The notes below the pieces were generated by a model. It saw only the letters and a list, made by a program, of their open reading frames with translations, had not been told where the DNA came from and searched no databases. Below, piece after piece: positions 5,001-50,200 of a DNA stretch of 64,000 nt (its first letter is position 1; every line of letters begins with the position of its first letter). The position numbers were made by a program, and so were the translations under genes. The stretch spans positions 21,172 through 85,171 of the forward strand of contig DF237350.1 of assembly GCA_000708835.1 (NCBI GenBank). Reading direction: 5' to 3'. This stretch comes from Klebsormidium nitens. Taxonomy: Eukaryota > Plantae > Klebsormidiophyceae.

Positions 5001-5289
5001 CTAAATGATCCTTACGTTCTGAGTGCTTCAAGATTAGACAGCCCACTTGCCATTTTAACCTAGTCCGAGGCTGCTCCCGCTCATGACACGAGCTTGATGC
5101 CTGGGTTCCGGTGTTGCGTGCTCCAGCAAACGAAGCGGAACTGGGCGTTCATCTCAAATGCATCTCATTGAAACGGGGGCGGTTAATTTGTTGCGCCTTT
5201 TGATACGAGCTCTCTTTGCCTGATTCAGTATCGCCTTCTTTATTTAGTATCGCCTTCTCCAGTTTTGAGACAGGCACTATGGAGGTGAG

Positions 5290-27667: not shown

Positions 27668-30584
27668 ATTTGAAGTGTTGAGAGTGCCAGGGACGCTAAA
27701 GGCACCTTGTGTTGAGTTTTGATTAGGCAATAAGATGCCGTCACTGTAAGAGTGCACGGCAGGGTTTGGAAAGGAAGACAGAACTTTGCATTGAGAGCAT
27801 TCAAAGAGTAGACTACCAAATACCACGACACGCAAGCAAGCACGTCGGCAATGACCGTTACTGATTCTGGGCTTCTCATTCCAATAGTGGGCTCATTGAA
27901 GTTCTCCTGACCACGAATACGCCATTTCTAAGTGAAACCTCCTTAGATTTCCACGTCGATTGTTTCGTTCAATGAGTCTTGCGCTAGTAGACCGCCAAGA
28001 CAAAGGAGCGGTACGTTCGTGGGCTGACCTTTCCCAGCTCAAACGAAGCGTCTTTCATTCTCGCTTGATGCCGCCATCAAGCTACGCGGTACATCTTGCT
28101 AAGTTTCGTTGCTACAGAAACTTTTGACCAAGTGAACTGTCAAGATTTCGTGTCTATTTGATCAGAGAACTGCTTGCGGGCTCGGATCGAGACCGGCACA
28201 TTCCATGATTGGACAGAGATGGAAACCTCGGACTAGCATTCCATGATTGTACAGAGATGGAACCTCGGACTATCTTTTTTCGGAAAGGTACTCTCCTGAC
28301 TGTCGGGGGAGTTCCTTGACCAATCGGAAGGTTCGCAATCGACACTTTTGCAACTTGTTGCGCCTGTCAGCCGCACCTGTCACTTTCAACTCCCCGCCAG
28401 TCTGACCTGAATTCGGCAAAACGATGCGTCCTGTCCTGTTGAGGCGGCATGGGTGCTTTGAACCTTGTCGCGCGCGTTCGTTGCGTGCGCATCCCGCCTC
28501 TCATCGGGCGTATGCAGCCGGAGAACAAGCATGCCAAAGAGGAATCATTGCTGCGCTGAACTCGCACAATCCAAAGTTTTGAGTTGCTCGGCACGTCTTT
28601 CATCCAGTTCTTCAAAGCCTCCTTTGATCCTTTGCTCACCCCGCGACCAGCGCGGCGCAGAGTGCTTTCTCATAAAGAAACGCGGGCCGGATATTGCTAG
28701 GGATCGTTCATCTGTGCATGCATCGATGGCAATGAGGTTGGCTTGATTGCTGAGGCTGAGAGCGAGCGCAACGAAATTGTATGAACAGGACTTTCGTCCA
28801 AGTCAAGGTGTTGCCTCTCCGGTGCCTCCTCTCTATCTGTCTTCTGCGCTCGAAACGGTGGTTTAGAAAGAAGCATTGCGGGCAAAGAAGACCTAATTTG
28901 AGGCTGCTGCCTGCCGATAACCTGCACCTGATGTTGTGCTTGCTTGAGCCCGGCCCGTTCTGACCCCGTCGGACTCTTTTGATCCACGAATGTAGCATCA
29001 GAAACATATTCGTTTCACACGCATCGAGTTCTGCCTCGAACCATTCTCGGTTGTACTGCCTCGACCGGCCACTGCGTGATCAGAAACGGTATTGCTTGGA
29101 GGCGTGCTTGGTCCTCCACTCTCAAACAACCTGGCTCGCCGCACTTTTGATCATCTGTTCGCCCCTGTCTTTATGTCTGACGATCGTTGTCGGGCCAGAT
29201 TTCTCTTGGACGCCCGCGCGTGCCTTGCACTTAGCTACCAATCGTCCGAGTTTCTATAGAATCCTCTTGCGTGTCTTCTGTACACCATCAACCACTTGCT
29301 ATTATAGCATCTTATACTTGGGGTACTTTTCGGACCCGGCCTAAAGTAATGTAAGATTCTGATTTTCGACCATCTCAAAGCGCTGAAGGTTTTGTGAGCG
29401 GCCGCGCGCGGGTCGCGCCGAGCGTCCGCGGCCGCGAGGGACCACATGAACTTCGCTTCGGGCCCGGATCTGAGCAAGTTGCGTGCGCGAGCACTGCAGG
29501 GTGACCGGCGAAGATACGCGGACTGGTTCAGATCAGCTGTGCCTCCACAACACAATGCTTAAAGATCTCGCCGCGCCAATCCGGCTCGCGCGCGCGCGCG
29601 CGGTGCGCCAGGCCTCGGGTCCCAGCGACGTGGCCCGCTGGAGACGCGCCGAAGCTGGCGCGGCCGCGCGGCGCGATCCAACTTGTTGACGGCTAGGCTC
29701 GGCGAAGATTTTCTCCAACAACTTTGTCTGGCCTGCTTTTCCTGTAAAGATGCCTCTTCGAAACTCATCTAGCTTCCTTCATGACATGCGGCTCAGATTA
29801 GACGGACGCTGTTAAATTGACACGCTTCAGATCTCCATCAACGGCCTGACGGAGTCACGTTGTCGTAACTTTTTTTCGTTTCCACACCTATAAGAAGCTC
29901 TCGTATCTGCATTCGGGCCTGATCAGGGATTAAAACAATCATTCGTGGTCAGCGTGTGGCCTGGACGTTTCTGCTTGTGCACCAGATACAAGAAAGCGCA
30001 GCGCGTTTCAGAAAGAAGACGATGACTGATTGCGAACGCTGAAGTCAGCCAAGAAAGAATAGGTGACGGGAGCACAAATTTTCTTGAGACTGTTGAATTT
30101 GCGTACTCGCACTGTGAGTAGGGGCAAATCTATTGCAGAACTGTTGCGGTAGAGACGAGTATCTGCTCAACTTGTGGCAATCATACATGCCAAGCAAAAC
30201 TCTCCCGGACGCCGCAAGATACCACCTTTTACACACGCCGTCTCCGGCTGACCTAGTCGACGCGGGTTGTTCCCAGAACGCTCCATTCTCGTCTGGCATC
30301 AGAGCACAGTCGGAGATCGAGTACTCACTGCAATGGACCTGGCCAGTGTCTAATCTGCATACCCAGCCGGCGTGCTTGGATGCGACGCCTCTAACATTAC
30401 TTGCTGGATTCATCTGCTGTTAAAATAAATACTCCACAACGAGAAACTTCAAGAAGCTCTTTGGACGAAGATGACTCTAAGTGGGCTGGTCCCCAAGAGG
30501 AGCGTTGTGCATGCCACCGTCTCTGAAGCCCTCGTGTATCCTTTCCGGAGAAACGGGCCGCTTAAGTTCAACGAGGCCAGCTTA

Positions 30585-30920
30585 CACAGGAAGGAAAGAC
30601 GGTTTGCCCGTTAACGGGCAGGAGGCCGGGCAACGCGTTCCCCGGCCTCCTGCCCGGTCATCGGCCGAAGTCGGGGCAGGGTAGCGCACTGCCCGGTGAT
30701 CGGGCAAACATCACCGGGCAAGCAGGCCGGGGAAGGGCTCATCTCGTGCACGGGTACAAGGCCGGGCAGGAGCGGCCGGATCCCGGGCAGCGACGCCGGG
30801 CAGGGGCTTTCCGCACGTCCGGGCAGGGCGACTGATGAGCGGGCAGCACAACCGGGCAGCCTCCGTTCAAGACCGGGCAACTAGACCGGGGAATGCATCA
30901 TATATGATCGGGCAATAAGC
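30585..30920. repeat. Left TIR plus subterminal array of (C)CGGGCA motifs
   Basis: More than ten CGGGCA/TGCCCG units in direct and inverted orientation. Most inner copies read CGGGCA on +. Confidence 0.9.
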
Positions 30921-31561
30921 ATTGACGGGCGCCACGTCACCGACGTGATGACGTCATATGATGAACCGATGATAGATCGGAAAGAGCAGGACGAGATGAA
31001 TCCGAGAATGTAAAAGAGGGAACAACAGTCAATTAACTTAGTGACAGTTTGAAAGACTTACGGTCCGTCTAGTACTTAGGCTATGCTGTGTCACTATGCG
31101 CCCGCTGCAATACACTATGTCCAACTGAACCTTTGTGCTGGTTCAATTCTGCTGTGCTCTAACTTCTGATCGCTATGCGCCCCGCTACCTCGTCGTCTGC
31201 ACTGCTGACTTCTCAACTCGGAAATCAAACTTGCGAATGCCGAGTCTTGCGTGACGCATGATGCCTCCGAGTCAACCTGCATGCAGAACGCCGATCAGGA
31301 GTTAGCTAGGTCGAACGCACGAAAGACTTTCTTGCCACGCCATCACAAATGTGATCGGCATATCGCGTTGCACACTGTCTAGACTACTCTGTTCAATAAA
31401 CACATAAGGAGTCAGTGAAAAGTTGAAAACAAGGACTTTCGTTGCCCTGTTGTTACCAGCGCTACAGTATTGAAAGCAGCACGCCGCCGTGGAGTGCACT
31501 TGACTGTCACAGACACCTTAGATTCCGGACCCTAAATGACAAAATTGATTCACCAACCTGA

Positions 31562-34500
31562 TCAGAAGCGAACCCGGACATCAGCAGGGTCCAATACGGT
31601 GCCTTCCTCCCGCCACTTCCGGTTCTTGATGACGACCTTCTTCTTCTTGATGAGCCCCTCGCCCAGAAGCTTCAGGAGGTAGTTCTGGTTGAAGCCCGTC
31701 AGATCGGGGGACTTCGAGATGCCCGGTAGCTTGAGCCGGTTGATCGCCTTCTGGAGCGCTCTGGAGGTCAGCTGCGAACAGAAGCGATCGACTGTAGTCA
31801 AGAAAGGGTAGCCTCGTACTCCAAACACTGTGGTCCTCGTAAGGTAACCCGCTCGAGAAAAAGCGGATGTTGGATTCAGATGTGTTTGTGCGTATCACGT
31901 GCAACACCCTGCACTATGAGGAAGACATTGCGACGGCACTTCATCGATTCACGCCAAATTATGCTTCACAAAGCCCACTCAATTTTGCAAGATCGAATCG
32001 GAACTGGAATGGAGTCAGAAGGGAACGAGACCGGGACCGGAACGGGTTGAGACCGAAACGAGACCGGGACAGAAAAAGTCAGAACGGAACGAGACCGGGT
32101 CAGAAACGGAATGAGAACGGAACGAGACCGGAATTGGAACGGGCTCGGAACGGAATCGATTTTAGATCGGAACACGATTTTGACCAGAATCGGAATCGGA
32201 ATCGGAATAGCAACTGAAGTGTAACGAAACTAAGATAAGACTGGAATGGATCTCAGATTGGAGCGGAATTCTGAGTGGAACCAGATCGAAACGGAATCAG
32301 ACCGGAACGGACAAGAGCGAGACCGTCGATCAGACCGGAAAGAAGGTCAGATTGAAGAGATTTTCGACCAGACCGAAGCACGAATCGGAATGGAATCTAG
32401 ACCGGAACCGATTCAGAATGGAACTCGACCGGAATCGGAACGGCTTCCGACCGGAACACGACTGGGACTGGGTCTGATAGCAGTACCAGAACGAAACTCG
32501 GACCTCGCTCTATAAAACATCCCGACGGCTTGTAATTGTGCTCAAGTGAAGTTGGTGTGGGCACTGAAAATACCGTCATTCCGAAGTACTTTTTAAGGAA
32601 ACAAATCGATATCAGTCGACCACGAAGTTCACGGTTCTCCAGGCTAGGTCTTGCTGCAACCCTTGTCGAGGTGACACTTCTGGCCGTTTCGATGGGCAAT
32701 GAGCTTTACCTGGTATGATGCGTTAACTTCCAGGGCGGTCATCGCGATAATCTGGTAGTTGTCGACCATCAACGGGTGCAACTTCTCGTCCTTGTCCTCG
32801 AAGGCGCCCCCAATCGGCAGATCTGACGTCGCCTCTGCATCGGAGTCCTCCTCTTCCGACGACTCGATTGCGGAGCCCGAAAGACTCAGCGACTCCTCGC
32901 TGTCCTCGTCCGACTTGCGCTTCTTCTTGGCCCCAGCCTTGCTCTGCTCCCGGGTCTTCTGTCGAGTGTCGGTTCCTGCCGCTGCCGGCTTGGAGTTCAC
33001 CACGTAACTGTCGTTGTGAATCATCCGGTTCATCTTGGGCGCCCGGTTCGACTGCCGCACGGCTTGGGTTTCCTCAACCGGCTGATCCGTTGGCGGTTCC
33101 TTGTTCTTTTGGCTGGGGCCTCCTGATTCGTCCTGCTCGTTTGGCTCTTCGTTAACGGGGGAAACACCCGCCGCGCGCTTCTTCTTGTTCTTCTCCCGAT
33201 CGCCCTGGCTGCCCTTCCGCTTCGCGGACCCCTTCTTCGTCTCGTCCAGCTTTCCCTTCTCCTCGCGCTCCTCTAAACGTTCCCCCTCGCCAGCTTTCAC
33301 GCGCTCCTCCGAACCCTTTCCGGCAGCCGACACACCCCGGGGGGGCGAGAGCGCAGACCCTGAGAGGACCGCAGCCGGGCGAGCTGCCTGCTGCGCTGCC
33401 TGGTTGATCAGCGCCTCCGCGCAGAGATCCGCTGACGTCTTGTTCTGGGGGCTCGATCGGTGTTGGCCAGATGCCTGCACAGAAAGACTCAGAACGATGT
33501 GAAACACTCTCAGCGTCAGGATATCCATTCCTCCTTTTTTTCCGAGACGAGCCGAAGCGCGCACAAAAGCGCAGGACCTGAATGCCGATGTTTGGCAAAA
33601 AGTCGCGACTTAAAAGAGGCAAAAAGAAAGGACTCGGAACCGGAGCCTTCGATGGCGCAGTTCGATAGCCGCCCGTGCGCGCGCGCACTCGTCTCAATTT
33701 CAGTCGGTTTGAAGAAGGGAGTCATCGGTTTCTGACGAAAGCCAGCGAATGTTAATAAAGACGTGCAGAAAGAACTGGAAAGGACCGTGACCGTTCAAAA
33801 GCGGAGGATTGACGGCGCAGATCAACAGCCACGCGCGCGCGCGCACTCGTCTCAAATTGAGCCGGCCTTGAAGAAGGGAATCACCGGTCTTTGCCAAAAG
33901 CCCGCAACTCTGAGACGCGCAGAAATATTTTGAAAGGAACGTCATCCACAATCAAATAATCGATGGCGCAGATCGACAGCCGCGTGCGCGCGCACTTATC
34001 TCAGATTCAGTCGGCCATGAAAAAGGGAAGCATTGGTTTCTGTCAAAGCCCGCGACTTAAGACGCGCCAAAAGAACTTGCCAAAAGGACCGTGATTCAGA
34101 AGCCGAGAATCGATGGCGCAGATCGACAGCCGCGCGCGCGCGCGCACTCATTTATTCGGCCTCAAAGAAGGAAATCAAGAGCGGTCTAATCACTTCACAT
34201 GGGGGCAAAAAAAGCCTTGGGCGGTCACCTTCTCAAAGCCCAAGGCGCCGGCATGTTCTTGGCACGCAAAACGGCCGCCGTCGTAGCATTCCACGTTGTA
34301 CACCTCGCGAAGGAAGCCTTGGAAGCACAGGTTGTGCACCGGCTCCTTGCAAACGTCGCACCGGTGCTGCGTGGGTTTTCCTGCCATTGCGCACGCTGGC
34401 AAGGTGCACTTTCCGCCCAGTCCCTGAAAAGAAATTGAAGTGGACGTGCAAATCAGGCAGTATCCGAGCATATCAACTGAAAAGTTGAGCGGGAAACCGG

Positions 34501-37500
34501 AGCTAGTAACCCGTGCTAATGAACCGACTCCTATTTGAGAAGCTGGCCCGAGCTGAAAAACCGACCAGAAAACCATCTAAAACGAGCGCCGAAAACCGGA
34601 GACTAAACCCCGTGCGGATGACGTTCATTCAAAATCCAAGAAGGAAAGCGGACCAAGCAAACCTGAGTTTGTTTCGAATGCGAGCAGGAAACTCGAGCAA
34701 ATTATTTGGATTGGAAACCCGGGCAGAACACTGTAGATGATTCAAACCAGACCAAGAGATAGTTTCAAAATGAGCCCGACACCCGTGCAGATGACCCAGA
34801 AGGGAACCCGACCAGATAATCGGAGCCGACAGCCAAATCAAACATGAAACTGCAACCAGGGTCACATGCAGACACCCGAGTTGAAATCCCGAACGGTAAA
34901 CCTGAGCCTTTTCTAACCTGAGCACGAAAAAGAACCCTATCTGTGCCTATGACATGGTTTGCCAGTCCAAGCATAAAGCCGAGCATATAACCTATGTTGC
35001 TAAGCATGAGAACAAGAAAACACCTCCCAGACCCCTCCCAGATGCCCAGAACTGACCTGTCGGAAGCCAAAGTTGCTGTGATGGTTGGCGCAGTAGAGCA
35101 GGTCCCCGTCGTAGTTCGCAACTCCGTACAGCTTTGTCAATAGCGTCTGCATGCACTCCTTGTGCACCGGCTCAAGACACGTCTGGCAGTAACCTGAAGG
35201 CCGCTCCGTCGACGAGCACGTGTCTAACGAGCAGCTCGTTTTCGGCTTTGGCTGCAATAGGAAAAGACTGTAGTGAGTCAAAGACAGCAGCCAGTGCTTA
35301 AATGCTGGCTGAAAAAGGAAGGGACTTTTGAACTGAGGCGCAGGGCTCAAAACCTTTTGGTTTGGGATCTGGTAAGCGAGATATGTTTTCTTCATTGTCT
35401 TCAAAAACGTTGATACAGTGGCGAATCAAAAAGTGGTTATTGAAATCTCGTTGGTTAGCCGCAAAGCAGGGGTTTCTTTGCCAGGCATGTCTACGCCGTG
35501 CCTGGGAAAGAAGGATTTCGTTAGTGGCTCGGTTAGGGGTTTGGACGCGAGACAGCATCTGCTAACGAGGAAAATGAAAAGAGAAGGCTCTGAAGTGCAG
35601 AAGATGGCGGTCAGGCGAAGCAGATCTCAAAATGGAGTGTGCTGACGTCATCAAAACGAGGGCTGTGTCAGTTGGGGGGCTGGAAAGCAAGCAGACATAA
35701 CGGGTCGCGCAATTTCCGGAATTCCTGGGTAAGGCAATTTAGAATAATGTGTGTGTGTGGCCGACGGAAATACAGGTCTGGACTCTCGAGACAAAACGGC
35801 TAAAATTTGCGTCTAAAATTGGGTCTGCAAAGAGGGTTATTTTGAGATGAGTCTGGCTGGAGGTGTCTAAAAGGTGATTTTCGGGGGTGCTTAACGGAGT
35901 GAAAAAGAGAGGTTTAAGCATTTTATCACCATAATCGGATCAAGAAGGTTCAATTAAATCGGGGGCTTGGGTTTTCCGGTCAAGAGTAGGGTGGGGACAC
36001 GTGGCGGCGCAGTATGCGGAAAATGGAGAAAGAGGCAAAAACAAGTGTTTTGAAGCGGGTTAAGGGTGGTCAGGGCGGCTTTTCAAGTCTTCGATAATGA
36101 TCGGAGTACAGAGAAGTTTCGGAAAGCAGGAAATCGGAGTCGGAGTGGACGTGGATAGCCAAACGGACACGTGGCGGGTGTTGCAAAAGCTGGATGTTAG
36201 AGACGGAAGGGGGACGGAAGGTCGTAGAACGCGGTTTTCGGGTTAGCTTTTTCGGGTTCAGGAGACGTCGAATGGAGAGGTAAATTAGGGAAGTTTAAAG
36301 ACTTGCAGATCTGCAAATAAAGTCTGCGGAGACATGTACAAGAGAAGATCGTACAAAAATGGCATGCGCGCTTTTTGGAAAGTGACAAGTGCCAACTTAC
36401 CGTTGTCTTGCCTGCGTCGCTAGCCGGAGCACGTGGTGCTTTTTCGAGGTCGATTCGTACAGCCGATTCGTTTGAGCGCTGGGTTGCCGCAGAGAGGTGT
36501 ACCTGCTTCGAAGACAATCATTCGTTACTTTCAATCTTCAATACATTTTTCTAACGGAGAGTCAACGCAACCCCGGAAACAGCACTTCAGATTTGCAGCC
36601 CTGAGCTCTAAGCCCTGACTTTAAACCACCGCCTCAATATCCACCTTTGATTGAGACGCAAACACAAAATCTTCAAAGCTTCCGTTTCAAAGCTGCCAGA
36701 AATTTTAAAAGTTTAGCTCCAGTACAAGTCTGCCAAAAACGTGGAAGGTTTTGGCACCACGGTGCCAGAAAGAGCAAGAATTTCTCGAAGGTTTCACGGT
36801 TTGAAGGTTCTGGTACCAGACACTTTCAGGATTCTGGCGCAAATCTGCCCCACTCACCTAGTCTGGAGGAGAAGACTCGGTGTTCAACGCTTTGTCAGGG
36901 AAGTTCGCGCTGTCAGGCGAAACGGATCCGCTGTTTTCTGCATCGGGCACCGGCTCCTGTACACATAGCGAGTTCAGGTTTGCCAGCATGTCTCAGCAAG
37001 CGCAAATCTGCAGTGGACGAGGCCGTTGTCTACGAAGAGCACCTGCTTCATCATAAACCACGATCGCGCGAGGTCCTCAAATAAAACCGTAGAGCATTCA
37101 GGTTCTCAGAAGCTTCTTGAAGGATATTGCCTATTGAAGCAAAGTCGACCAAGCAAGTTGAAGACACTTCGAGATACATGTGCTGAGCAGGTCGGATAGT
37201 GACGTGGCGAAAGTCGAAAAATCCCTGACCTCAAGGGGTTCGTTCTTGTCAGCATGCGATGGGGGAAGATTCATGGCCTCTTGACTCTCGGGATCCGGAT
37301 TTCCGCACGATTGGTCCTGCAACGTGAACGGCTTTGGATGAATGACGAGATCAAGCAAGAGAGTGGAACAGAGCGAGAGTATCTTTGGTCAATATGAACT
37401 TGGACATCTTCTACAATCGTTTTTGCACAGGCAAGACACGTAATGTGAATACGCCACAGGTTTGCTTGTGGCGCATGCACATAGGCATGTGACGTATCCG

Positions 37501-39188
37501 ATCAAACCTTTGCCTGATCACACCTATGCATAATCACAGGTCTGCGGGGTATTCACACCTCGCTGATTGGCTTCGCACACTGACCTTCGATGATTCATTC
37601 TCGTTGCAATGATGGGGCTTCTCCTGCATTTCCGGAGCGCCATCTTTTCCAGCTTGAGCTCGCTTCTGCAGCCACGAAACAGCCAGCGCTTAAGTTCATT
37701 CTGGTGGAAAGATCAGGCAAACTGGCTCGAACACGTCAGATGTGTCTATAGAAACACAATAGCACAGCGAATTAGACAGCAAACAAATCAAAGAAGCCTT
37801 ATAACTTATCAGTCTTTGAGTAATTGAACTGTCATAAAAAGAGATTGTGGCACGCAGAAACTGGGATTGCGATTTGAATCTTTGCAGACCTTCTTCGCAG
37901 CATGAGAACAACGCAGCAGTTTATGTGATGGCCGCTTCCCTACCTTTAGTTGCTTGCGGTCGTGGTAGCGTTTCAGCTTGTCAGCCTGGCTCTTCTTGTA
38001 ACGGTCCGCGTGCACCAGCTTCTTTTTCAGGTCGTCAATGATGGCGGTGAATGTGGAGTTGTAGCAAGCTGCAAGTGATACTGTACGCTTGAGCGTCAAA
38101 GTTACATGCACTGCAATAAAACCCTTGCTTACAAGCACTGTGATCAAATCAATTAGACAAGTTGCTTGTTACTAGAAAGCATGACAAATCTCACTTGTTT
38201 CAAGAAGCTGATTGTAACACAAAGCTCCTCAAGCAGTCACAAAACCCTCTGCAATCTACTCTTGGGACTGGTTGATCTTAAAACAAAGAATGAGCAGAAC
38301 GGAGAATATTTTCAACAATGGAGGTGTACGTACGATTTCGAATCCGTTCTGCGAATTCGTCTAACGCCATATGATGCTCAGAGCAAACGTTGGCTTACCT
38401 TTAGGCCACTTGTAGACTGTGCCGTCCAAACCTACAATCTCACCAGCGTGCTCGTCATCTTCTAGAATTGAATCAAAGATCTTGTCTCTCCATTCTTGGT
38501 CCTTTGGATTCTTCTTCAGGTTGATGGACCTCAACCTCGTCAATTCTTCTTCTGAAGGAGTCTCTTTCGCCTTCGTTTCATTAGGCATGTAATCACTCAA
38601 TCCCAGATCCGCTGCAACACGGCTGACCACACGAGCATGAAAGCTCTGCAGCCTCCTGACGCCGTGCTTCCCCACAACCGCTGTATACTTCTTGCTGTGC
38701 CACAGTGTTTTGAAAAGCTTGGATGCAGTCACTGGCGAGCTCGGTGCTGCTCTGCTTTGCGACCTACTCTGAGTATTGTTTCCCCGCTCTGAAACGTCTA
38801 CTTGTTGAGTCAAGTTCTCTGACATGCTTTCTCTCATACCAGTGCTCCCTTGGATGCCTTTCTGCAGATTGACTGCCTGGCCTCCTCCGTCTCTTGTCAG
38901 AGTGTCCCCAGCAGTACGAGCGGTACCTGTGCCTCCATTGGATGCTTCTGATAAAAGCCACGACTTTCTCAGATCTTTCAGAAGAAGTTTGTGTCCTCTT
39001 TTTATCTCAGACCCGCTGTCCAGATCTTTGAAATCTTCAACAAGCGCGTCCCCTTCTGGTCCCTGCGCCAAGAAGACTCTCCCACTAATTGCTTCTTCGA
39101 GGATGTATTTGGTATACAAGTCACTCTCCAACTCTTTTGAAACCTCCTCTGCAAACTCTTGCGCACTTAGACCACGTATGCGACTCAT
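31562..39188 (-). CDS. Transposon accessory gene: SAM-like N-terminus, helical region, two PHD-like Cys/His fingers, charged low-complexity region and C-terminal domain (~855 codons; one in-frame TAG at the end of exon 4)
   Basis: Predicted exons (minus strand) 39188-38399, 38068-37944, 37316-37230, 36956-36858, 36502-36401, 35251-35057, 34423-34229, 33474-32710 and 31771-31562. All are GT-AG and phases join (1, then all 0). The N-terminus LSAQEFAEEVSKEL…YTKYILEEAISGRVFL…IKRGHKLLLKDL fits a SAM pattern. Exons 3-5 are less certain than the others. Confidence 0.72.
31995..32500 (+). repeat. Degenerate GGAAC/GGAAT/GAGACC satellite-like tract in an intron
   Basis: Dense CGGAAC, CGGAAT and GAGACCGG units within the last intron of the accessory gene. 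Confidence 0.85.
33560..34190. repeat. Diverged tandem repeat, ~150-160 bp unit, about 4 copies, intronic
   Basis: GA(T/C)GGCGCAG(A/T)TC…GCGCGCGCACT…GAAGAAGGGA recurs at 33651, 33811, 33962 and 34112. Confidence 0.85.
35320..36262 (-). repeat. Intronic ~950-bp repeat, copy A (inverted relative to 40745-41715)
   Basis: Example: GTGCTGACGTCATCAAAACGAGGGCTGTGTCAGTTGGGGGGCTGGAAAGCA (~35639) matches the reverse complement of ~41340-41392, GTGCTGACGTCATCAAAAACACGGCTGTGTCAAACAGGGGGGCTGAAAAGCA. Collinear matches continue along the whole length. Confidence 0.85.
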
Positions 39189-39921
39189 TGCTCTACCTGT
39201 TTGACCTTGCGCAGTTGCCTTGACAGCAAAGGTCTCATGCACGGACCTGCTTCGTTGTCTTGCAGATGCCTCGAGCAGGTCCTCTTTGAGATGTCGCAAA
39301 GAAGAAGCTGTGCTGCATGCAGAAAACGAAGCAGTCACTTGCAATAGATGCAATTTTACTCTTAGAAACCACGCTCTTTCAAACTTTCTCGCGGGCTTTT
39401 GAAGGCAGTCTACACAGTTTGACAAGACACACGTACGACTCTCCCAAATTCCGAACTTCGGTTCTTGCTGCCGATTTTTGCGGTCCTAAATGCGGTTAAG
39501 ACTTAACCAACCGCATATATATGGTATCGAAGCGGCGTGCATGCTAAAACGGAAATCATGCAAGATCGGGTTTAGATTAACCCTTAGATTGTCGCTTGAC
39601 GATCGCTTGACGATCGTGACACATCTTTCGAGCGACTCAAAGCACATGAGAATTCAAAATTCAAAGCACAGAGCATGCGCGCATCAGAGAACAAAAGATG
39701 ATCGGAGAACAGAAGATGAAGGAAAGAACTAAGGAAAGCGGCCGGCTTTGGAGGTCAGGCCACACATGTTCAAGCAGCAGCGCTTCAAGGTCATGCAGAA
39801 CGCATTCGGGTACTGCAAGTCTCATTCACGACAGAAGATTAAAAAGCACGCAGAATTGAATCAATCTGGAGACAAATTTGATAGTTCGATGGTGACTATG
39901 GAATGATACATCACTAGGAAA
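39189..39921. promoter_or_regulatory. Putative bidirectional promoter between the accessory gene and the transposase
   Basis: ~730 bp between divergent ATGs (39188 on -, 39922 on +). Inferred from gene layout only. Confidence 0.5.
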
Positions 39922-42900
39922 ATGCTTCGTCTAGAGCCTATCAACTCAGAGGGCAAAGTGCTGTGCACATGTAAGTTTTGCACATCGCGAGGGAGTGGGG
40001 CTGCTCCGGGAGGAGGACGGTATATTTGCGCTTCCGCAAGAAGAAAGCACCTTGCACTCGACAGCTCATGCAGGGCTCATGCAGATGTTGCCACTGCAGC
40101 ACGCTTGGAGCAGCTGCAAGGGGGCTCAGAAGATCAAGATTGGGGGTCGGGTGATATTGATGGGGCGAGTTGCCTGGATCCTGCAGATCAGGCTTGTCAT
40201 GAAGAGAAAAGACGGGAAAGCAGCAGGCCCAATCCTTCTGAGTCAGAATCTGGAAGCAGCAGGCGGGCTGAAAGCGTTGCAGGAGAACGGGCAAGCATTG
40301 GCAGCTGGTTCACAGGCGTGCAACTACCAGACTTCGAGTATGCAGATGACTCAGAATCGCATGGAAACGGACCAGCGCAAGGCGCTCCTGTGTCTGAAGT
40401 AGAGCTAAAACTCATGGACTGTCTGGTTGACTTGGTGAAGATTGGAGACAAAGCAGGTCTTAGCAACGAAATCATGGACAAGCTTGTGAAGCTATGCTTC
40501 TCTAGGACCAACTCTATCGCCGCAGCCATCGACCCTCGATGGAAGGAAACGGTGGACAGGCTGAATCTGCCACAGTCTCATGACCAGGTAGGCCCCTACT
40601 GTCCTTGTGTCCGTGTGAAGAGGCAATAATACATATATATAGATGCTGCAACATCTGTAGTCAATATTGCCTGGTTGTGTCCTAGTGAAGTCCATCAGCG
40701 AGTAGTGTTTGAGCTCTTGCCCGTACCTCTCTAGTTGAAAGCAGCTTAACCGACAAAGCCAACGACCTGAAAACCCTGTTTTGTGACTCTTCTCGACCCG
40801 TCTTCTTTGCATCTGCCACGTAGAATCTAAGAAGCTTTTGCACTCTTTGCACTCTTTGCGCTCTTCTCATCCCCAGTTCCTATTCCCCAAAAAGCCTTCT
40901 TGTGGCCCTTTTGACGACTTACTTAACTTCGCCAGGTCCACCTCCAACCAGCTTCCGAAAACCCGTTTCAAAACACCTACTTTTGTCTCCTTTCTCTTTT
41001 TCCGCAGTCTGTGCCACGTGCCCGAACCCTATTTTTGGCTCGATAACCCACGCTCCCAGCTGAATCAAATCTTCTAAATCCGCTGTGGTGTCCAAATGCT
41101 CAACCCCCTGATTTTCTTGTCCGTTAATCACCTCCGAGAACCTTCTTTTCGTCCCCCCCGAGCTGGCAGAGTAGCTCTTAGTTAACCCTCTGCGCAGACC
41201 CGTTTTTTGATCCGATTACCGGACGAAACGATTCGAAACTTTAATTGAATGCAAGTTTCTGGATGGTTGTTCCAGACATACATCACCCTAAATCTCTTGG
41301 CCGTTCGTTTCCGTACAAAGCGGGACCCGTTTTGTCAACATGCTTTTCAGCCCCCCTGTTTGACACAGCCGTGTTTTTGATGACGTCAGCACGATCCACT
41401 CTGAGACGGACTTCGTCCGACCATCATTTTCCGTACTTTCATGTCTTCCTTACAGACTCCAACCTTCGGCCGACCCTATTTCTCAATCGAAACCTCTAAA
41501 CCGACTGTTCACAAAATCCCTCTTCGCCAGGTACGGCCCAGCCATGTCTGGCAAAGTACCCCAGGTTCCGCAGCTAACCGAAAAACACTTACCCACTTTT
41601 TAATTCTTCGACCTTGATAATTTTTAAGAGGGCGTTGAACCGAACACACGTACTCCGCGTTTCAGATCTGAAGTCCGAAAGGTTTTGAATCCGGCGCTTC
41701 AGTTCAAAATCTGGCTCCCATCTTAAGCCTCTCTCCAAACAGCTCGATCTTTGCTGACGTCAGCGCTTCCCACACTGGCATCAGAACCTTCCAAACCCTG
41801 ATATCGACTTTCTGTCTTTCCTATCTCAATTGCACCCCTTTTGGTCAGAGTTTACGGTCCCAGCTCCAGCATCTGAAACTCCGCCCCTCGTATCACTTCT
41901 ACAGAAAACACCGTGAAACGCATCTGTACAGATTTCAGAACCAATCACTCGAATGCCAATTCGGCAACTGCAGCTGAAACGGTGCTGAAAAGGTGCACTC
42001 CTCTTCTTTTGCAGGTGACGAACTACCTCGCAAGGTCGTCACGTCTACTTGGAGAAGTCCAAACGTACCGCTGGCACCCCGGCCCCGAGAAAGGGCAAGA
42101 CAAGGGCCACTGGCATCTTTTTGCACCCAGTTCAGAGGACAACAAGTCCACCCCGTGCCCCGAGTGCGAAGACCGACCAGGCAGGCCAGCGTGGCGCGAC
42201 TGCCCCGAACACCAAGAAAAGTGCCCCGACTGCGGGTTCTTGCGCCGGGATGCCTTTGAACTCCCCTTCATCTCCCCCGAGCTGCATGCTCGCGCAAAGC
42301 TAACCACGGTCGAGGGGTGCAAGGACGCCACGGTCAGAGGGGCTTGGGGCGAGCGAGACCACTGGTTGGGGCAACCGAAAGGGGGGGTACACGAGCCGCA
42401 GTCCGAAGTCTGGGACGGGGAGAGGTGGCGAGACGACGCCGCTTTCTTCGACCCCCAGTCCAGCTTCCTCTTGCCCTTGAGATGCAGTGAGTGCTGCAAA
42501 GCACGGAACGTGTATTGCGCCCAAAATTTTCGACCCCCGTGGTTCACCCGACCGACCCCCCAGATGTGGTGTGCCGAACGGAAGCGCTTCGAAACTCGGT
42601 GTCCGATCTGCAAGAGTGCAGTCGTGGCCACTTTGGAAGAGCTCCAAAAACGGGGGGATCCAAGGAACCTGAAGCTCGGACTTCACCTGGACGGGTTTCC
42701 TGCGGCGAGCACTTCAAACAAGTCGAGCTGCATTATGGACATCTTCCCGATGACAGTGTCGAAGCTGACCCTGCACAAGGCAGCGAGATTGGCTGTGGCC
42801 TGTCATGTACCCCCAGAAGATGCAGATGGTCCCCGGGCCCGACAGCTACGATGCCTTCATGCTGGTCCTTGTCCTCGACGCCCTGAGGCTGTTCATCGAG

Positions 42901-45900
42901 GGCGTCGAACTTGACTACGCCCTTCCCCCCCAAGAGATAAGCGCCCATGTCCCCCCTAGGAGCGGACCGGTCAGAATTCGGATGATGATCTCCAGCGTCT
43001 TCTCCGATCTTCCGGCGCTTGCGGACATGGTAAAGTTCAAGCTCGGGGGTTTTCACGTATCAAGGGGCTGCAAGCATGTCGGCAGCTACGTGGACGGAAA
43101 GCTGGTCTACACGGACGGCCGCCGACTCGCCCGCGACGGATGCGTCCCGAAGACAATGGACGAGGTGGCGGCGGCCATGCTCGAGCAGCTGGGGGCGGAA
43201 ACAAAAGCGGAGCGCGCGGAAATTGGGCACCGGACCGGCATCATCGGGTTTAGCATGTTGCTAATTTTGTGGGCCGCATACGGTCTGCACCTAGTGCTTG
43301 ACGTATGCAGCGACTTTCTGCACTGCGGGCCGGAAAACCTGTGCAAGCACCTGATCCGCGATATGCTGTACGGGGTGAGCCGGAAGCAGGGGGAAACAAC
43401 GGAATTAGTAGAACCCCCCCGGGCGGATCTGAAGGAGTTCGGCAGGCGACTGGCGGGGATTAAGCCCNNNNNNNNNNNNNNNNNNNNNNNNNNNNNNNNN
43501 NNNNNNNNNNNNNNNNNNNNNNNNNNNNNNNNNNNNNNNNNNNNNNNNNNNNNNNNNNNNNNNNNNNNNNNNNNNNNNNNNNNNNNNNNNNNNNNNNNNN
43601 NNNNNNNNNNNNNNNNNNNNNNNNNNNNNNNNNNNNNNNNNNNNNNNNNNNNNNNNNNNNNNNNNNNNNNNNNNNNNNNNNNNNNNNNNNNNNNNNNNNN
43701 NNNNNNNNNNNNNNNNNNNNNNNNNNNNNCGAGATCCGCCACGGGACGGAAGGCCGTCAGACGAGCGGCTTTTAACGAGCATGCGAACGGAGGGGGTGGT
43801 AGTCGGTCAGCTGCCGGAAAATTGGGAGCGGCGGTCTTTTCTGCGCCTCGAGAATCCGCAGCGTCTGGCCGTCGAGAGGATCCTAGACAAAGAGGCGCGG
43901 GCGGCCGGGAGGACGGGCGCCCGGCTGGAAGCCGGTACCGTCAAACGGGCAAAGAGCGTTCAGTTGGGGGAGCACAACTTTGCGGTCGGCGACCACGCTG
44001 TGCTGCGCCCAGAAGCTGCGGGCCGGTCGGAGGAGTACGTGCTCGTGGACTCCTTCTTCACAGCAAAGCCGCAAAATGGTCCCCGGCGGGTGTTCGTTCA
44101 GTTCTCTGCCTTCCAGGCGCAACGGGATGGGGCAACCGGGCTGCCTTTGGGCGGCAGACACCACAACTGCCTCATGCTGCATCCCCTCGAGCAAGCCCAG
44201 AAGCGCGTCCGGCTGGCTCGGGACCTGCGCCGGCACTTCATCCCGTGCCCCGCTCCTGGAGAAACCGTCTTTACTGGGAGCAGCCACGTGATCGAGGTCG
44301 CCCCGAGCGGGTTCGGTTTCGAGGCCCACGACGTGTGGGTGCCGGTTTACCCCCGGGTGAGCAAGCTCGCTTCTCTAGGACACTTCTTAGAGTGGCCTAC
44401 CGGCGTTCCTTCCATCGTAGATGTACAGGTTTCGAAACAATTGAGTTTTCTTTATGCTTTGCTGTAGTGCCGCGGTTCTGATTTTGAAACGGTCGTCTGC
44501 GGTTTGGTATGGGACTTCTGCAGATGCGAGGAGCCGGAAAGTGTGAGGAGGATCATCAAGAGATTCGATGCAGATTAAGAAGCTCTCACTTGCTCGTATC
44601 TTGTTCTTTTTCGTGATTTAGAAACAGCTTTGATGCAAGCAACCGCCGCTTTAGGTCAGGCAGGAAGCTGAGTCTGAGACGCATTCACACGCGAGGACAG
44701 GATCTTCTATGTTGAATTGTGTTCTGTCAACCTCCACGAATCGAAAACCAGCAGCTTTCTCCTTTGTTAGCTGGTACTTATTCAATCAACGATCCTTCAG
44801 CTTTTTCTTGGCGGCCGCTTACTGAAATCCGTTTTTGCCTTGCCGATTCTCTACATCAGTGTCCCTGTCGCTTACTTATGGGTTAAACCGCTAACCAACT
44901 CAATAATCTCTGTTAAGCCGCTAACTGATGTGGGTTATCTGTGGGTTAAGCACCTTACTGCTGACGGCTGCTATGGAATTAAGCTGCCGTTTCCTCTAAA
45001 GCTTAAACCGCTTATTTCTGATCGTTATTTGTAAGATGATGAGCTAACTGCTGTCGATTACCCGTAAGGCCTTGAGGTTTTCCGGTCGTACTCCCTGAAG
45101 AGATTGGGAAGACGCATCAGACTCCTTGGGTCCGTCAGTTTTGGGTCCAAATTTGTCCTCAAATACGTCCGATTCAACTCGGGAGCTTAAAGCATTCTGG
45201 TCTTTAAGCGCCGTTATCTTTAGTGGTGCAGTTGATATGCTCGTACATTTAGTAAGATCTGAGAGGAGCACGTTGACGTGTCATGCTCTCTGATTAGTCG
45301 ATCGTTGACCGTTTGCAAAGTCGAAGACGTCCAAATTAATCCGTTCTCAGCTTGCAGTCAGCTTTGACCGTTTTGGTTGCACAGCTTTCTCTTGCTTTCT
45401 TTCAGCAGTAGACTATTCTTAGAGTGCTTTTGACTGCTCTCCAACTTTAGTCGCTCGTCTTTTTGTGTGACGCGGTCACGATTTGGCAGCTTCTCAGCCT
45501 CACCATCGGATACCAACCCGTGCTTGCAGGTTGGAGACGTGGTGAGGCTGGCGGTCCGTGAACCTCCGGACGTCCGCCAAGAGGGCGTTCAAGGGCAGTG
45601 GGGGTACGGGGCCCCGTACGACATCCTCAAATTTGTGAAACCTGGGTTCTCCCTCTCGTACGCCCTCGTGAAGCAAGTGAGCAGCGGCCGGGGAAGGATG
45701 GCCGTCGTGCAGTGGCTGCGGCGCTCCGAACCCGCTGCACCGGACGGGGAGGAGAGCGACTGGACGCTGTGGCCTATAGCCGGACGCACGGCGATGGACG
45801 TGGATGACGTCAGCGAGAGCGACGCCAGTGAGAGCGAGAGCGAGGACGAGATCGCGGGCGCGTTCGACCTCAAGCGAGTCACGTGGAACTCGATCGTCGA

Positions 45901-45988
45901 CCGCGTGGAGTCGATAAAGGCGTTCGAGGACGAGAGGGGAACGGTGTTCCGCTTCAAGACGCTTCCGCCCGTGAGGGTACGGATTTAG
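39922..45988 (+). CDS. CACTA/EnSpm-family (Tnp2-like) DDE transposase, multi-exon; one frameshift and an assembly gap
   Basis: Exon 39922-40587 has the N-terminal CxCxxC…H zinc motif (CTCKFC…RRKH). The exon from 42015 has SEVWDGERWR, DPRNLKLGLHLDGF (catalytic D1, 42690), VPGPDSYDAF, SDLPAL (D2, 43006) and DFLHC (DxxH). A frameshift lies near 42768-42771. The frame is open after the gap to 44356, and the last exon is 45530-45988 (VYPR|VGDVV). Confidence 0.92.
40745..41715 (+). repeat. Intronic ~950-bp repeat, copy B, in transposase intron 1 (40588-42014)
   Basis: Collinear reverse-complement match to 35320-36262, e.g. CGCTTCAGTTCAAAA (~41695) vs reverse complement of TTTTGAACTGAGGCG (~35326). 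Confidence 0.85.
43468..43729. other. Assembly gap (262 N) inside the transposase
   Basis: Run of N. True length and content are unknown. Confidence 1.
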
Positions 45989-45989
45989 G

Positions 45990-46240
45990 GATAAGCGGAA
46001 GAAAGCGGAACCGGAAACGGAACGGAGAGCGGAACCGAAACGGAGACCGGAAGTGGAATTGGAACGGAAAGCGGAGTTGGAAGCGGAATCGAAAGCAGAA
46101 CTGGCAACGGAACGGAATTGGAGACGGAACGGGTTACAGGGACGGAAGCGTAATCGGATTCGGAAGCGGTATTGAAACCGAAAGCAGTAACGGAAAAGAA
46201 AGCGGATCGGAACGGGAGAGGGAAACGGAGTTCCGGTGAA
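45990..46240 (+). repeat. Degenerate GGAAC/GGAAA tract immediately after the transposase stop
   Basis: Dense CGGAAC, CGGAAA and CGGAAT units, same family and orientation as 31995-32500. Confidence 0.85.
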
Positions 46241-46899
46241 GCAACGGAGGAGGGGGGGAAGACCGGAGGGCGTTGCTTCGAAAAAGTGTTGGGGTTACAG
46301 GTCTGTATACCCTCGAGTTGCAGAAGAGTTGCAAGGGAGTATACTAAGTGATTGAGGACTATTTTGGAATCCATGAGAGCTTGGCCTGTATAAGATGGAC
46401 TACCTTGTTCCATTCATACATCTCCTTAGACGATTCATACATCTCCTCAGGCAAATTGATTCTATCAACATTCAATGTGGTATATCACGTACTTGCTTCA
46501 AGAGTATGGTACGCATGCATTACGGTAGTTTCATTTGCATGATTGGCTCTCGAAATCGAACAATTTCGAAACGTGCTACTGTGTCGAGTTGGATTAGCTT
46601 GTGCCAGCTTCTGTTTGTCACGCCGATTTGTGCAGAGTTGATGAGTGCGCGTGAGTCACACATGTTATGATTGTTCAATTTTGTATGTATGCTCCATCGA
46701 CATAAATCGTTTAACGTACACACATATGCATAGCTGAGACTCCTGACTCCTACCAAAGACTTAGTCTCGTCCAGCTGCACGTGCACATGCGTATTGGATC
46801 TGGAGAACAGATTTACTACGATTGTTTGATTACATACAGCGTTTTGTATGGCTCGTAAGCAATTCACGTTAACAAACACTAGCAACGGTCAAGCAGTTG

Positions 46900-47260
46900 A
46901 TTGCTGCCCGGTCATGTCCTGGGGGCCTTGCCCGGCCTGTCATCCTTCCCCGCTCATCATTCTGCTGCCCGATCTTTTGTTGCCCGATCTCGGCCGATCT
47001 TGTTGCCCGATCATCTTCGCTGCCCGGAGACAACTTCGCTGCCCGGTGTTTGTTGCCCGGCCAGCGCCGTTCTTCCCCGACCACCCGTGTTGCCCGGTCA
47101 TTCTGCAAGTCCGGGCAAGGCAACCTGAAGTTCATTGCCCGGTCATGTGTCCGGGCAGGGATCCGGCATGATCGGGCAGGACACCCGAAGCCCGGGCAGC
47201 GCTGGCGAGCATTGGGGTGGCCGGGCAAGAAGACCGGGCAAACCGGTTTTCCGCCCTGTG
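46900..47260. repeat. Right subterminal TGCCCG/CGGGCA array plus TIR
   Basis: About ten inner TGCCCG units followed by outer CGGGCA units, ending in CCTGTG. Mirror image of the left end. Confidence 0.9.
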
Positions 47261-50200
47261 TTATGGACACGTCATGGTTATGTACACAGCAAACCCCTTC
47301 TAGATGCGGGTAGAAATACCTCCTGATCTCGTCAGGAACTGTCGTCGTTATTCTGTTCCATGTCCGTCCGGGCCCGCAACCGGGGTCTTTCATGGACGCT
47401 GTATGATATAAGGTCCAAAGACCAATACTGCGTCCAGTTGGAAGGCTGACAATTTTGTCGTTAGACCTTAAGCGAAGGAGTTTTCATATCGATTTAGACC
47501 CTTTTGATCCCTCTGCTGAAGGCTCGATCATACGATCACAGCGTTGCAGAGGATTCTTGTAGATTCGACACAGTTGAGGTAGCGTTTGCAGCCGTTCATC
47601 TTTCCATCGAAGACAATGAGGACGTAGGACCGCTAACGCTAAGAGAGAGTGCAATTTTGGCAATCGACCTCCTGAATGCCGCTGGCCGTTCAAGTTGATT
47701 CAGCCGTTAACTGATCAGTGGGTGAACGTATGTATCCAATTATTTGTTGCCTGGGATGTATCCGGATGGATTCAAATACAAAATGTTTGAGAACTAACGT
47801 GGATTGAACAGGTCGAAATTCATTTGATCTGATCTGCCTTGTGCTACGTTGCTACTCACGCCGCTTCATTCGACTTATTCCTCTCTATGCCCACACAGCC
47901 CTTGATCAATTGTTGCAATGCTTCAGTGGTCCGATTTGTGACAGATATGAATCCCAGAACGTGAGCCTTCTCAAGGCTTACCAAATATTTTGTTGAGCCG
48001 CAGTTTTGAGGTCGTGTTTCTCGACTGTCTCCAGGCAACGAATCCTTCACGCGGCCGCGCGGACGCAGCGCGGGAACTGCAGCGGCCACGCCGGCACGTA
48101 TGAAGTTCCGAATCTGCATTGAGATTGAGGCGAAGCGACAGATGGATCAGTTGGCCCACTGACACACAAAGTTCGAGCGCAGCCGCAAAGTCAGCCCCCG
48201 TCGTGCTCAGGCGCGGGGCCCGCGGCCGCGCTGCGGATTTGGGCGACTGCAGGATTATCGCTCGCATTGGGCCGCGGCCGGCCCAGACCCCGAGGGTTTT
48301 GGGCCGCGCCCTCGCCGACGCGTTTGAGCCGCGGCCGGCTCCGACGGCACGCGCCAAAGCTGCCAGCCGCGCGGGTGGGGGTGCAGATAGCCCCGTCAAA
48401 CTTGTGTCACACTGTGGATCAGATGAGATTCGAGTATTGCTGAGCACTAAATGGAGTGACGCAGCCTCTCGGGTCGTCCGAGCAAAGGAACATATCTTTC
48501 ATAACCGTCTTATGATGTCTTTTGGTTGTGCGTTTTCGCGTTACGGAAGTAGATATAGATGCATGTTTTGCTGCGGTATAGTAGCGGCAGAGAAAAGTTG
48601 TCTGCCTACATGTCAAATACAAGGGTATCGAGCGCCTCCTCAGTCCTCTCCAGGGCCGCCGCTGCAAGATGTTTTGAATCTCTCTTGTATAGTGAGGAGC
48701 ATTGATTGCTAGAGCCGAAGGAGGGCGGTTGCGTGTGGGACATCCAGTTTTTCAAACCAAGAAGGCGTTTTAAGACTCTGAAGCAAAATTGACCATATGT
48801 ATTCATGCCTGGCTGCTCTTTTAACATCTCATCCAACGTGTATATTCATGAGACGGCGAGGATGACAAAGTGACGGCCTTGGCACCAGGCTGGGATGCTG
48901 GGTTCAAGCGCAAATCTTTAGGGCAATGGTACTCTGGGGTCGCCGCAGATCTTGAGATTTCTTGGGCGTAAGCGGAAAAGCGGTTTCCTCTCAAGTGTCC
49001 TTCATTACACGGAAGGAATACGTTTTACTATGTTTCCTCAATTCGTATGTGTGCTGGCTGTGACTAGCCAATGTACTATACATAGGGCGGCTTCAAATCG
49101 TTCTTGTGAGTGTGCCGAAGCGAGCGCACCATGGAAATTGTGTGACAAGTGACTAGGCAGCCTCACCTCAAGGGAACGGCTACAAACAAAGAGGCTCATG
49201 GCTGCACGCTGCCTGAGATCCAATGGATCAGCTTTGACCTTATTATGCTGAAAACCCGACCCCTAGCTCGCGGTGCACCGTTGTCAAGTCCGAACCCTTT
49301 ACCCCGTTCGATTGGCTCGTGACGGCAAGCAATGCCAAAGACAATACTATTGGGATTATTGGTGCAAGTCTTGTTGGCTTGTACATATGGATGCCATTAC
49401 AACTGTTTGAGCCTCAGATTCTCTGTTGAGGCGTTTGCGTACGCGTATACGAGGAAAGAGGAGTTATGTCTTGTCGACTACACTGAGGTTTCCTGCCTGC
49501 TCCAAGTGAGTCGCCCTTTACATATATGTAGTGGATAGCTCTGCAGGATCTACCTTACAGTCCATACGGAGACGTTACGTCATCACTCTCTTTGCGAAGA
49601 TGAGCGTTGACACAGAGTCAGTTGACGTACGAAGACATCGGGGCAATGACTAGGATCAGTCGGGCGCTGCATGCTTGCTCAATGACGGTGCTGTTTCTTC
49701 ATCCCGTTCGAAACCTGACAAAGATTATTGACGTTCAGATGTCGGCAAAGTTTTCAAAGCGTTAGGTGTCCGCTTTCTTTACTGCCCACATTCCAACTGT
49801 ATGATGCCAGGACGAAGAAGAGGGCCTTCTAACTGGACGAAGGCCCATCTCATTTTAAGAGGGTCTGAATCATTATCCCTATCGCGAGAAACAAAATCCG
49901 CCAATGACTCTGGATGTCTTCAAAGCCCACAAACATAGAGACGTCTCTGTTTACAACCGTTTCCGAGATCCTGTGTTTTGTTCTATCCTGTCTGCATTTC
50001 AATTTCAGGCCCTCTGCTTCTCTTCCGACTCCAAGATGATGGATTCCGTCTCCGCACAGTCAATCTCCCTTTTTCGATGTCCTTCCGGTGCTCCGGCGAA
50101 GGCATATTGAACGCGTAAGCACAGAACGGTTTCCGGTTGCATAGTACGTACCAGAACAAAGCGTGCACGGAGAAGGGAGCAGAGACAAGGGGCCGGCCTA

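Follow-up and report, generated by a model that had tools for sequence, protein, structure and literature searches.

What role could a transposon have for a second gene that stands head to head with the gene of its transposase? The question is raised by an element of the alga Klebsormidium nitens, found in a stretch of 64,000 nucleotides (nt) of contig DF237350.1 (assembly GCA_000708835.1, positions 21,172 to 85,171 of the forward strand), which is referred to below as the window. The element spans positions 30585-47260 of the window (16.7 kb), has the termini CACAG...CTGTG and is a real cut-and-paste DNA transposon of the CACTA/EnSpm type with exactly defined ends. It contains a transposase gene on the plus strand and, on the minus strand, the divergent gene in question, which is referred to as the partner. 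On balance, it seems rather probable that the family to which this element belongs has one promoter region for two divergent genes, which encode a DDE transposase and an accessory protein that is conserved and resembles TnpA of the maize element En/Spm in its role. The partner would be a functional counterpart of TnpA and not a homolog of it.

Termini and subterminal arrays

The element is placed among the CACTA/EnSpm transposons because of its CAC...GTG termini, 3-bp target-site duplications (TSDs), subterminal arrays and the presence of Transposase_21 in relatives of its transposase. The two terminal inverted repeats (TIRs) agree at 22 of 26 positions, and the inverted-repeat search paired them over 27 nt with 85% identity. 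The left TIR has four mismatches both to the right TIR and to the family consensus CACAGGGCGGAA..CCGGTTTGCCCG (L002, L003 and L007, related loci that are described below). A degenerate pattern of the termini matched the 64 kb twice, at the two ends of the element, with 0 matches expected. Termini of the same kind are present in the relatives L002, L003, L007 and L008. The locus L007 contains a second complete member of the family, 17,676 bp long, which is flanked by a 3-bp TSD (GCT/GCT). No clean TSD was found for L002, another complete element with a length of 17.2 kb.

The hexamer CGGGCA/TGCCCG occurs in 15 copies at the left end and 16 copies at the right end of the element, not more than 350 bp from the ends, as against about 0.5 copies per kb elsewhere. 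The repeat motif of the arrays, ACCGGGCA, is present in 15-16 copies per end and has the extended form A(T/A)G(A/C)CCGGGCA. The positions and orientations of the copies are nearly identical in L002, though the end regions of the two elements are only 67-74% identical. The retention of array positions amid such divergence is a pattern that would be expected of protein-binding sites. The original prediction, made from the letters of the window, had described a CACAG-type EnSpm element with exact termini, a TSD and subterminal arrays, and this description is borne out by the ends, the TTA/TTA duplication and the 15 + 16 motif copies. It had also called the element intact-ended, which is correct for the ends, whereas the transposase gene is frameshifted and gapped, making this copy non-autonomous as assembled. 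The coordinates of all features are listed in Table 1.

Table 1. Features of the transposon in the window, in order of position
Feature	Position	Strand	Basis or remark
Left TSD, TTA	30582..30584		read directly; identical to 47261-47263
Left TIR, CACAGGAAGGAAAGACGGTTTGCCCG	30585..30610	+	direct reading, inverted-repeat search, pattern scan
Left subterminal array, 15x CGGGCA/TGCCCG	30605..30914		motif count
Partner (accessory) gene, annotated 815 aa in GCA_000708835.1	31562..39188	-	annotation
Last partner exon, conserved C-terminal domain	31771-31562	-	conserved across subfamilies
Charged tail exon	33474-32710	-	conserved across subfamilies
Finger 2 exon, C4HC2H	34423-34229	-	conserved across subfamilies
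Finger 1 exon, C4HC2H	35251-35057	-	conserved across subfamilies
Inverted-duplication arm 1	35326..36061		within the long intron of the partner; pairs with 40960-41709
Partner exon, tentative, phase 0	~36500-36401	-	splice signals; in-frame indel vs L003
Partner exon, tentative, phase 0	37665-37585	-	splice signals; in-frame indel vs L003
Partner exon 2, conserved helical segment	38068-37944	-	conserved across subfamilies
Partner exon 1, SAM domain (residues 1-85) and linker	39188-38399	-	conserved across subfamilies
Intergenic region, 733 bp	39189..39921		between the two conserved divergent ATGs
Transposase gene, defective copy	39922..45988	+	homology to relatives
Transposase exon, N-terminal CxCxxC...H region	39922-40587	+	homology
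Inverted-duplication arm 2	40960..41709		within transposase intron 1
Transposase DDE core	42015-43467, gap, 43730-44356	+	homology
Frameshift, 2-bp deletion, GCG--AGAT vs GCGGAGGAC	42784..42787 (~42786)	+	alignment to L001, L002, L003
Assembly gap, 262 N	43468..43729		relatives carry 624-625 bp here
Transposase C-terminal domain exon	45530-45988	+	homology
Right subterminal array, 16x CGGGCA/TGCCCG	46905..47240		motif count
Right TIR, reverse complement CACAGGGCGGAAAACCGGTTTGCCCG	47235..47260	-	imperfect inverted copy of the left TIR
Right TSD, TTA	47261..47263		read directly

Transposase

Judged by its distant relatives with Transposase_21, the transposase is a DDE enzyme of the CACTA/EnSpm type. 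Direct matches to Pfam, including PF02992, were obtained neither for the raw open reading frames (ORFs) of the window nor for the intact ORF of the related locus L001, which encodes 940 amino acids (aa). An exhaustive phmmer search among 1.84 billion proteins revealed 164 relatives of the transposase and linked the L001 ORF at E values of 1e-17 to 1e-35 to proteins that match PF02992. The distant long relatives matching this family (Transposase_21, the tnp2/TnpD family) come from the liverwort Riccia sorocarpa, the fern Adiantum nelumboides and Logan or JGI records. The PF02992 score of protein P0037 is 35.6 bits against a cut-off of 28.6, and P0021 and P0023 are slightly under the cut-off. 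The product of the liverwort relative L009 also matches PF02992, weakly.

The closer relatives include, besides the 940-aa product of L001, the proteins P0003 (1035 aa) and P0153 (1231 aa). In an alignment of 13 transposase sequences, the block GDPRN..H.DGF is invariant, and further Asp, His and Trp residues are invariant as well. These include D432 and H439; Cys positions are conserved, and most of this region falls inside the gap of the window copy. The conserved start of the transposase is the ATG at 39922, located 5' of the annotated start. The N-terminal exon is kept in L001, L002 and L003 with a ratio of nonsynonymous to synonymous substitution rates (dN/dS) of 0.27-0.44, and the dN/dS of the core is 0.08-0.14 in the comparison of the window with L003.

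Residues 740-1035 of P0003, which correspond to about 43900-44356 and 45530-45988 of the window, obtained protein-atlas feature scores of 0.91-0.92 to clusters of fungal hypothetical proteins. One of the fungal clusters matched by this C-terminal part is named BAH domain-containing. As a lead, the name of this cluster hints at a possible chromatin-binding module in the transposase itself.

Conservation of the gene pair

The product of partner exon 1 matched two proteins, and these together with the transposase matches led to eight further loci. In every Klebsormidium-type locus fetched, a homolog of the partner lies upstream of the transposase gene and is divergent from it, so that the head-to-head pairing, already noticed in the window, is borne out in all these related loci. 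The pair was found in K. nitens at the window, L001, L003, L007 and L008, and in one metagenome at L002, L004 and L005, with transposase identities ranging from 87% down to 35%. The nearest relatives are L003 and L001, both from K. nitens and both with a transposase identity of about 87%. The L003 locus begins inside the partner gene, which is complete as far as the locus extends and has two fingers; the partner of L001 is truncated after exon 2, and the left end of this element is missing. In the K. nitens loci L007 and L008 (about 50%), the partner has one finger. As for the metagenomic loci, the complete element L002 (about 78%) encodes two fingers, L004 (48%) contains only the SAM region inside the fetched range, and L005 (35%) encodes the exon-1 homolog P0160. 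The family is small, with about five annotated copies in K. nitens, and its intact reading frames are divided among different copies.

The metagenome (JGI 3300060284) has contigs of 50-157 kb with the three diverged members of the family. In view of these three members, it probably contains a Klebsormidium-like alga.

In the comparison of the window with L003, the dN/dS of the partner is 0.14 in the SAM domain, 0.18 and 0.15 in the fingers, 0.24-0.26 in the linkers and 0.42 in the charged tail, and the synonymous divergence (dS) is 0.45-1.4. By these ratios, the partner is under purifying selection. Relatives of the partner outside these transposons were not found in two database searches, one of which used a profile of six copies.

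The partner gene and its product

The annotated coordinates of the partner gene were taken from locus L006, which was fetched via protein P0004 and is 100% identical to window positions 30474-55988, including the same run of N. The partner starts with the ATG at 39188 on the minus strand, the transposase with the conserved ATG at 39922 on the plus strand, and the 733 bp between these divergent starts are, as judged from this arrangement, presumed to be a bidirectional promoter.

Six exons of the partner are conserved across subfamilies. The best splice-site model has eight exons and a product of 812-821 aa, compared with the annotated 815 aa; the nine exons originally proposed for this gene could not be confirmed, since no RNA across an intron was found. 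Enumeration of six-exon models for the annotated length gave hundreds of solutions and was not decisive. The junction of exons 1 and 2 matches the public model P0001, and both finger exons are 195 nt long, in phase 0 and have clean AG/GT borders. The best conserved part between subfamilies comprises the end of the tail exon and the last exon (about 110 aa, 48-55% identity). A winged helix was suspected in this C-terminal domain, and no match to it was found in Pfam or the protein atlas.

Structures were modelled for the first partner exon and for one of the finger exons. In the AlphaFold2 (AF2) model of the former, residues 1-85 form five helices with a predicted local distance difference test score (pLDDT) of about 85. 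The top Foldseek matches of this model are nearly all SAM domains (TM 0.6-0.77, target-normalised). In VIA-align, about 35 solved SAM entries superpose on it along the whole domain with Z 5-10, and the scores drop sharply to below Z 3 for non-SAM chains. In the best superpositions, Z reaches 8-10 with a root-mean-square deviation (rmsd) of about 2 Å (1.7-2.5 Å). Polycomb-group and related polymerising SAM domains (L3MBTL3, Ph/PHC3, Scm and SAMD1) have the same five-helix fold, with Z and rmsd in this range; unlike them, the partner domain has no Pfam SAM match, and its identity to them is 10-20%. Searches with SAM_1, SAM_2 and SAM_PNT of Pfam at E up to 10 gave no match to the partner. The best match of the region in a PDB profile search is the L3MBTL3 SAM with an E value of 0.08, which is below significance, and a language-model search reached SAM clusters at a score of 0.85 only. 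As a predicted fold, the N-terminal SAM domain of the partner is well supported.

The fingers follow the pattern C-x4-C-x10-C-x2-C-x4-H-x2-C-x20-C-x2-H, with a spacing of 9 between the second and third Cys in finger 1 of the window and L003. Their ligands C6, C11, C22, C25, H30, C33, C54 and H57 are invariant in 6/6 fingers from three elements, and L007 and L008, with one finger each, have this ligand pattern too. The C4HC3 pattern of PHD, with its CxxC...CxxCx4HxxC...CxxC spacing, differs from this in two respects: in the partner, four residues separate the first two ligands, and His takes the eighth ligand position. Since the one finger of L007 and L008 is similar to finger 2, it is probably finger 1 that arose later, by duplication of the exon. 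The finger model has a pLDDT of 84, and its structural matches in PDB and Swiss-Prot are essentially only PHD and RING domains, all of them weak (Foldseek E at least 0.4, TM 0.35-0.5, VIA Z at most 3.5). The Pfam PHD family matches the fingers at E values of 0.02-0.05, under its cut-off, and Znf_SCAND3 is also sub-threshold; the best match in a sequence-profile search of PDB is a C1 domain (E 0.05). "PHD/RING-like cross-brace finger" appears to be a fair label for the modelled C4HC2H fingers, and the label of a histone reader is not established by these models. The combination of a SAM-like domain and two PHD-like fingers, which had been read from the window, is well supported in its first part, the SAM fold, and weak in its second, since all scores of the PHD-like label are sub-threshold.

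Possible role of the partner protein

En/Spm requires both TnpA and TnpD, and its subterminal repeats are bound by TnpA; between CACTA families, the TnpA-like proteins show little or no similarity (PMC2613891). For the partner, we infer oligomerisation, binding to the arrays and a requirement for transposition. Self-association of the SAM domain would lead to cooperative loading of many copies of the protein on the 15-16 ACCGGGCA sites of each end, and the loaded protein would connect the ends with each other and bring in or license the transposase. Contact of the fingers with chromatin would be possible in addition. Such a role, TnpA-like and exerted at the subterminal arrays, accounts for the observations no less well than chromatin reading does.

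Several observations weigh against a TnpA-like role. No DNA-binding domain was recognised in the partner by Pfam and protein-atlas searches of its exons, and PHD-type fingers usually bind histone tails or proteins, not DNA. Judging by its Cys/His residues, the transposase's N-terminal region could read the arrays instead. Polymerising and monomeric SAM domains are indistinguishable in the model. The two genes also decay independently: in L001 (DF237352.1, positions 4557-7379, minus strand), the 940-aa transposase ORF is uninterrupted, and the distal half of the partner and that end of the element are lost, which is the opposite of the decay in the window copy. In the liverwort locus L009, the transposase is followed downstream by a gene of the same direction that is not similar to the partner; the partnership is thus confined to the Klebsormidium-type lineage and does not extend to all relatives. 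No listed RNA run contained the partner stretch, and no intron-spanning RNA was found. One RNA run gave two short exact contigs with a depth of 2-3, which span no intron and could be DNA, and the remaining matches in that run are 18-nt chance matches.

A less likely, though not negligible, explanation is that the partner is a chromatin reader encoded by the transposon. Its fingers would read histone tails, its SAM domain would polymerise or co-polymerise with SAM proteins of the host, and the protein would protect the element from silencing or steer its integration without binding the element's own DNA. The PHD and RING matches of the fingers are consistent with this, many of them being histone-H3 readers, as are the order of the finger ligands, which is that of PHD C4HC3 except for the last ligand, and the nearest solved SAM domains, which include those of the Polycomb-group proteins L3MBTL3, Ph/PHC3, Scm and Sfmbt. 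However, the finger matches are sub-significant in Pfam, Foldseek (TM at most 0.5) and VIA-align alike, and the best sequence-profile match in PDB is not a PHD. The likeness to Polycomb SAM domains is at the level of the fold only, and the SAM domains of CNK, Shank and DGK score equally. Moreover, about 15 conserved array sites per end would be left without a binding protein. Histone reading, anti-silencing and target-site selection, which are taken from the names of the domains, are possible functions of the modelled protein.

It is improbable that the partner acts as a mimic of host chromatin regulators. In that case, host proteins with a SAM domain, of the Polycomb type or others, would be drawn into polymers with its own SAM domain and its fingers would read histone tails, so that the element would evade or exploit silencing or choose its integration sites.

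There is a similarly small chance that the partner is passenger cargo, captured once by an ancestral element and devoid of a role in transposition. DNA transposons are known to capture host sequences (PMC2528002), and cargo would agree with the intact transposase ORF beside a truncated partner in L001, the lack of the partner in the Riccia relative and the fact that partner transcription was not seen in the listed RNA runs. Nevertheless, in each of the nine Klebsormidium-type loci the partner has kept its divergent position, at transposase identities down to 35%, and the dN/dS of its domains is 0.14-0.26. The finger exon was duplicated, and both copies retain all eight ligands. A host homolog was not found in the two database searches. 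A gene whose position is conserved, which is under purifying selection and whose ligands were all retained after an exon duplication is unlikely to be cargo. The alternative of a one-off captured fragment, which had been named in the original prediction, does not agree with the presence of the partner in every related locus fetched and with the lack of a host-gene match. A captured host gene ranks low, given that no host homolog was found and that the partner is under purifying selection.

State of the window copy

As judged from its assembled sequence, the window copy is non-autonomous because of a 2-bp deletion and an unsequenced gap in its transposase gene, and it could move only with transposase supplied in trans. 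It retains both ends and an apparently open accessory gene. In tblastn comparisons of the relatives' transposase with the window, the frame switches at about 42786. The flanks of the assembly gap, 43467 and 43730, are codon boundaries of the homologous frame, which ends and restarts exactly at these positions. Between the flanks, L001 and L003 have 624-625 bp (208 codons in L001), compared with 262 N in the window, so the length of the gap is arbitrary and the apparent change of frame across it is meaningless. The region missing in the gap includes HMP..GPPDAYWCYAQER with the third catalytic residue, where L001 reads ...HMPANVRMHGPPDAYWCYAQERYIRKL...

The public model of the transposase, P0004 (KFL_004010040, 708 aa), extends over 40474-45988 on the plus strand. 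It removes by splicing positions 42489-42786, which contain LHLDGF with the first catalytic Asp, and positions 43375-43861, across the gap. The model begins at an internal Met, though the conserved ORF starts at 39922. The frameshift and the gap have made this 708-aa model artefactual.

An inverted duplication with 66.5% identity over 764 bp was also detected in the window copy. It is old, and its arms flank the divergent promoter region. Positions 41433-41762, partly in arm 2, are common to an intron of L003. Inverted repeats of at least 40 nt were found in none of the loci L002, L003, L007 and L008. The duplication was considered and rejected both as a feature of the family and as an inserted repeat: it is unique to the window copy, and the fetched loci have no further copies of it.

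Short tandem repeats, composed of GAACGGAA-type units of 11-12 bp and of longer periods, are located at 32017-32155, 32381-32434 and 45996-46117. The GAACGGAA-type repeats lie about 1.2-1.8 kb in from each end, in the last intron of the partner and directly after the stop codon of the transposase. Another repeat, a 150-bp unit present 3.2 times (74% matches) with (GC)n runs, occupies 33649-34143 in the intron between the finger 2 exon and the tail exon.

Comparison with known systems and biological meaning

The element shares with maize En/Spm the CAC... termini, a 3-bp TSD, subterminal arrays of short motifs at both ends, a transposase of the DDE type that is related to tnp2/Transposase_21 and a second protein encoded by the element. 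Unlike En/Spm, it has the termini CACAG instead of CACTA, its transposase is too diverged for a direct match to PF02992, and its genes are separate and divergent, whereas the two proteins of En/Spm are made from splice forms of one co-directional transcript. The partner contains a SAM domain and C4HC2H fingers and is not similar in sequence to TnpA/TNP1. No partner exon matched a Pfam family indicating homology to TnpA/TNP1, including Transposase_24, at E up to 10; the matches obtained at this threshold were only sub-threshold zinc fingers and chance-level ones.

RAG1/RAG2 and ProtoRAG also combine a transposase, belonging to the CACTA-Mirage-Chapaev-Transib clade, with a second protein. Vertebrate RAG2 has a PHD, which reads histone H3 trimethylated at lysine 4 (H3K4me3), and a Kelch propeller; it lacks a SAM domain. 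The likeness of the Klebsormidium pair to these systems is conceptual only, and homology between the partner and RAG2 was not seen.

Other two-gene DNA transposons with an accessory protein include PIF/Harbinger with the Myb-like ORF1, MuDR with MURB and VANDAL with VANC, and such proteins interact with the transposase or the ends, or counteract silencing (PMC12973397). The Klebsormidium element resembles these in the combination of a transposase with a lineage-specific accessory protein. In contrast, they belong to other superfamilies and have other accessory folds, and no SAM or PHD-like domains are reported for them in PMC12973397. The literature library that was searched contains no publication combining CACTA with "sterile alpha motif" and no detailed description of Klebsormidium EnSpm elements. 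The superfamily and its logic of two genes were already known, and accessory proteins that are not homologous to each other are the rule between CACTA families (PMC2613891). The accessory protein with a SAM domain and C4HC2H fingers and the divergent arrangement of the gene pair are new.

Intact frames are split between the copies of a small family, which makes reconstitution feasible. If the fingers read chromatin, the partner would be an example of a chromatin factor encoded by a transposon, in an alga closely related to land plants. If it is a mimic of host regulators, it would represent a chromatin-level module for counter-defence or targeting in an early-diverging streptophyte, and regulators of the host might stem from such a module. 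A second protein is needed by CACTA elements; to our knowledge, TnpA of maize is the only one whose biochemistry is known. It seems that, throughout one algal lineage, CACTA elements use an accessory protein that is unrelated to it and has recognisable modules, and the combination of a SAM domain with position-conserved arrays of about 15 sites offers a concrete model of how subterminal repeats may be read and the ends of the element paired.

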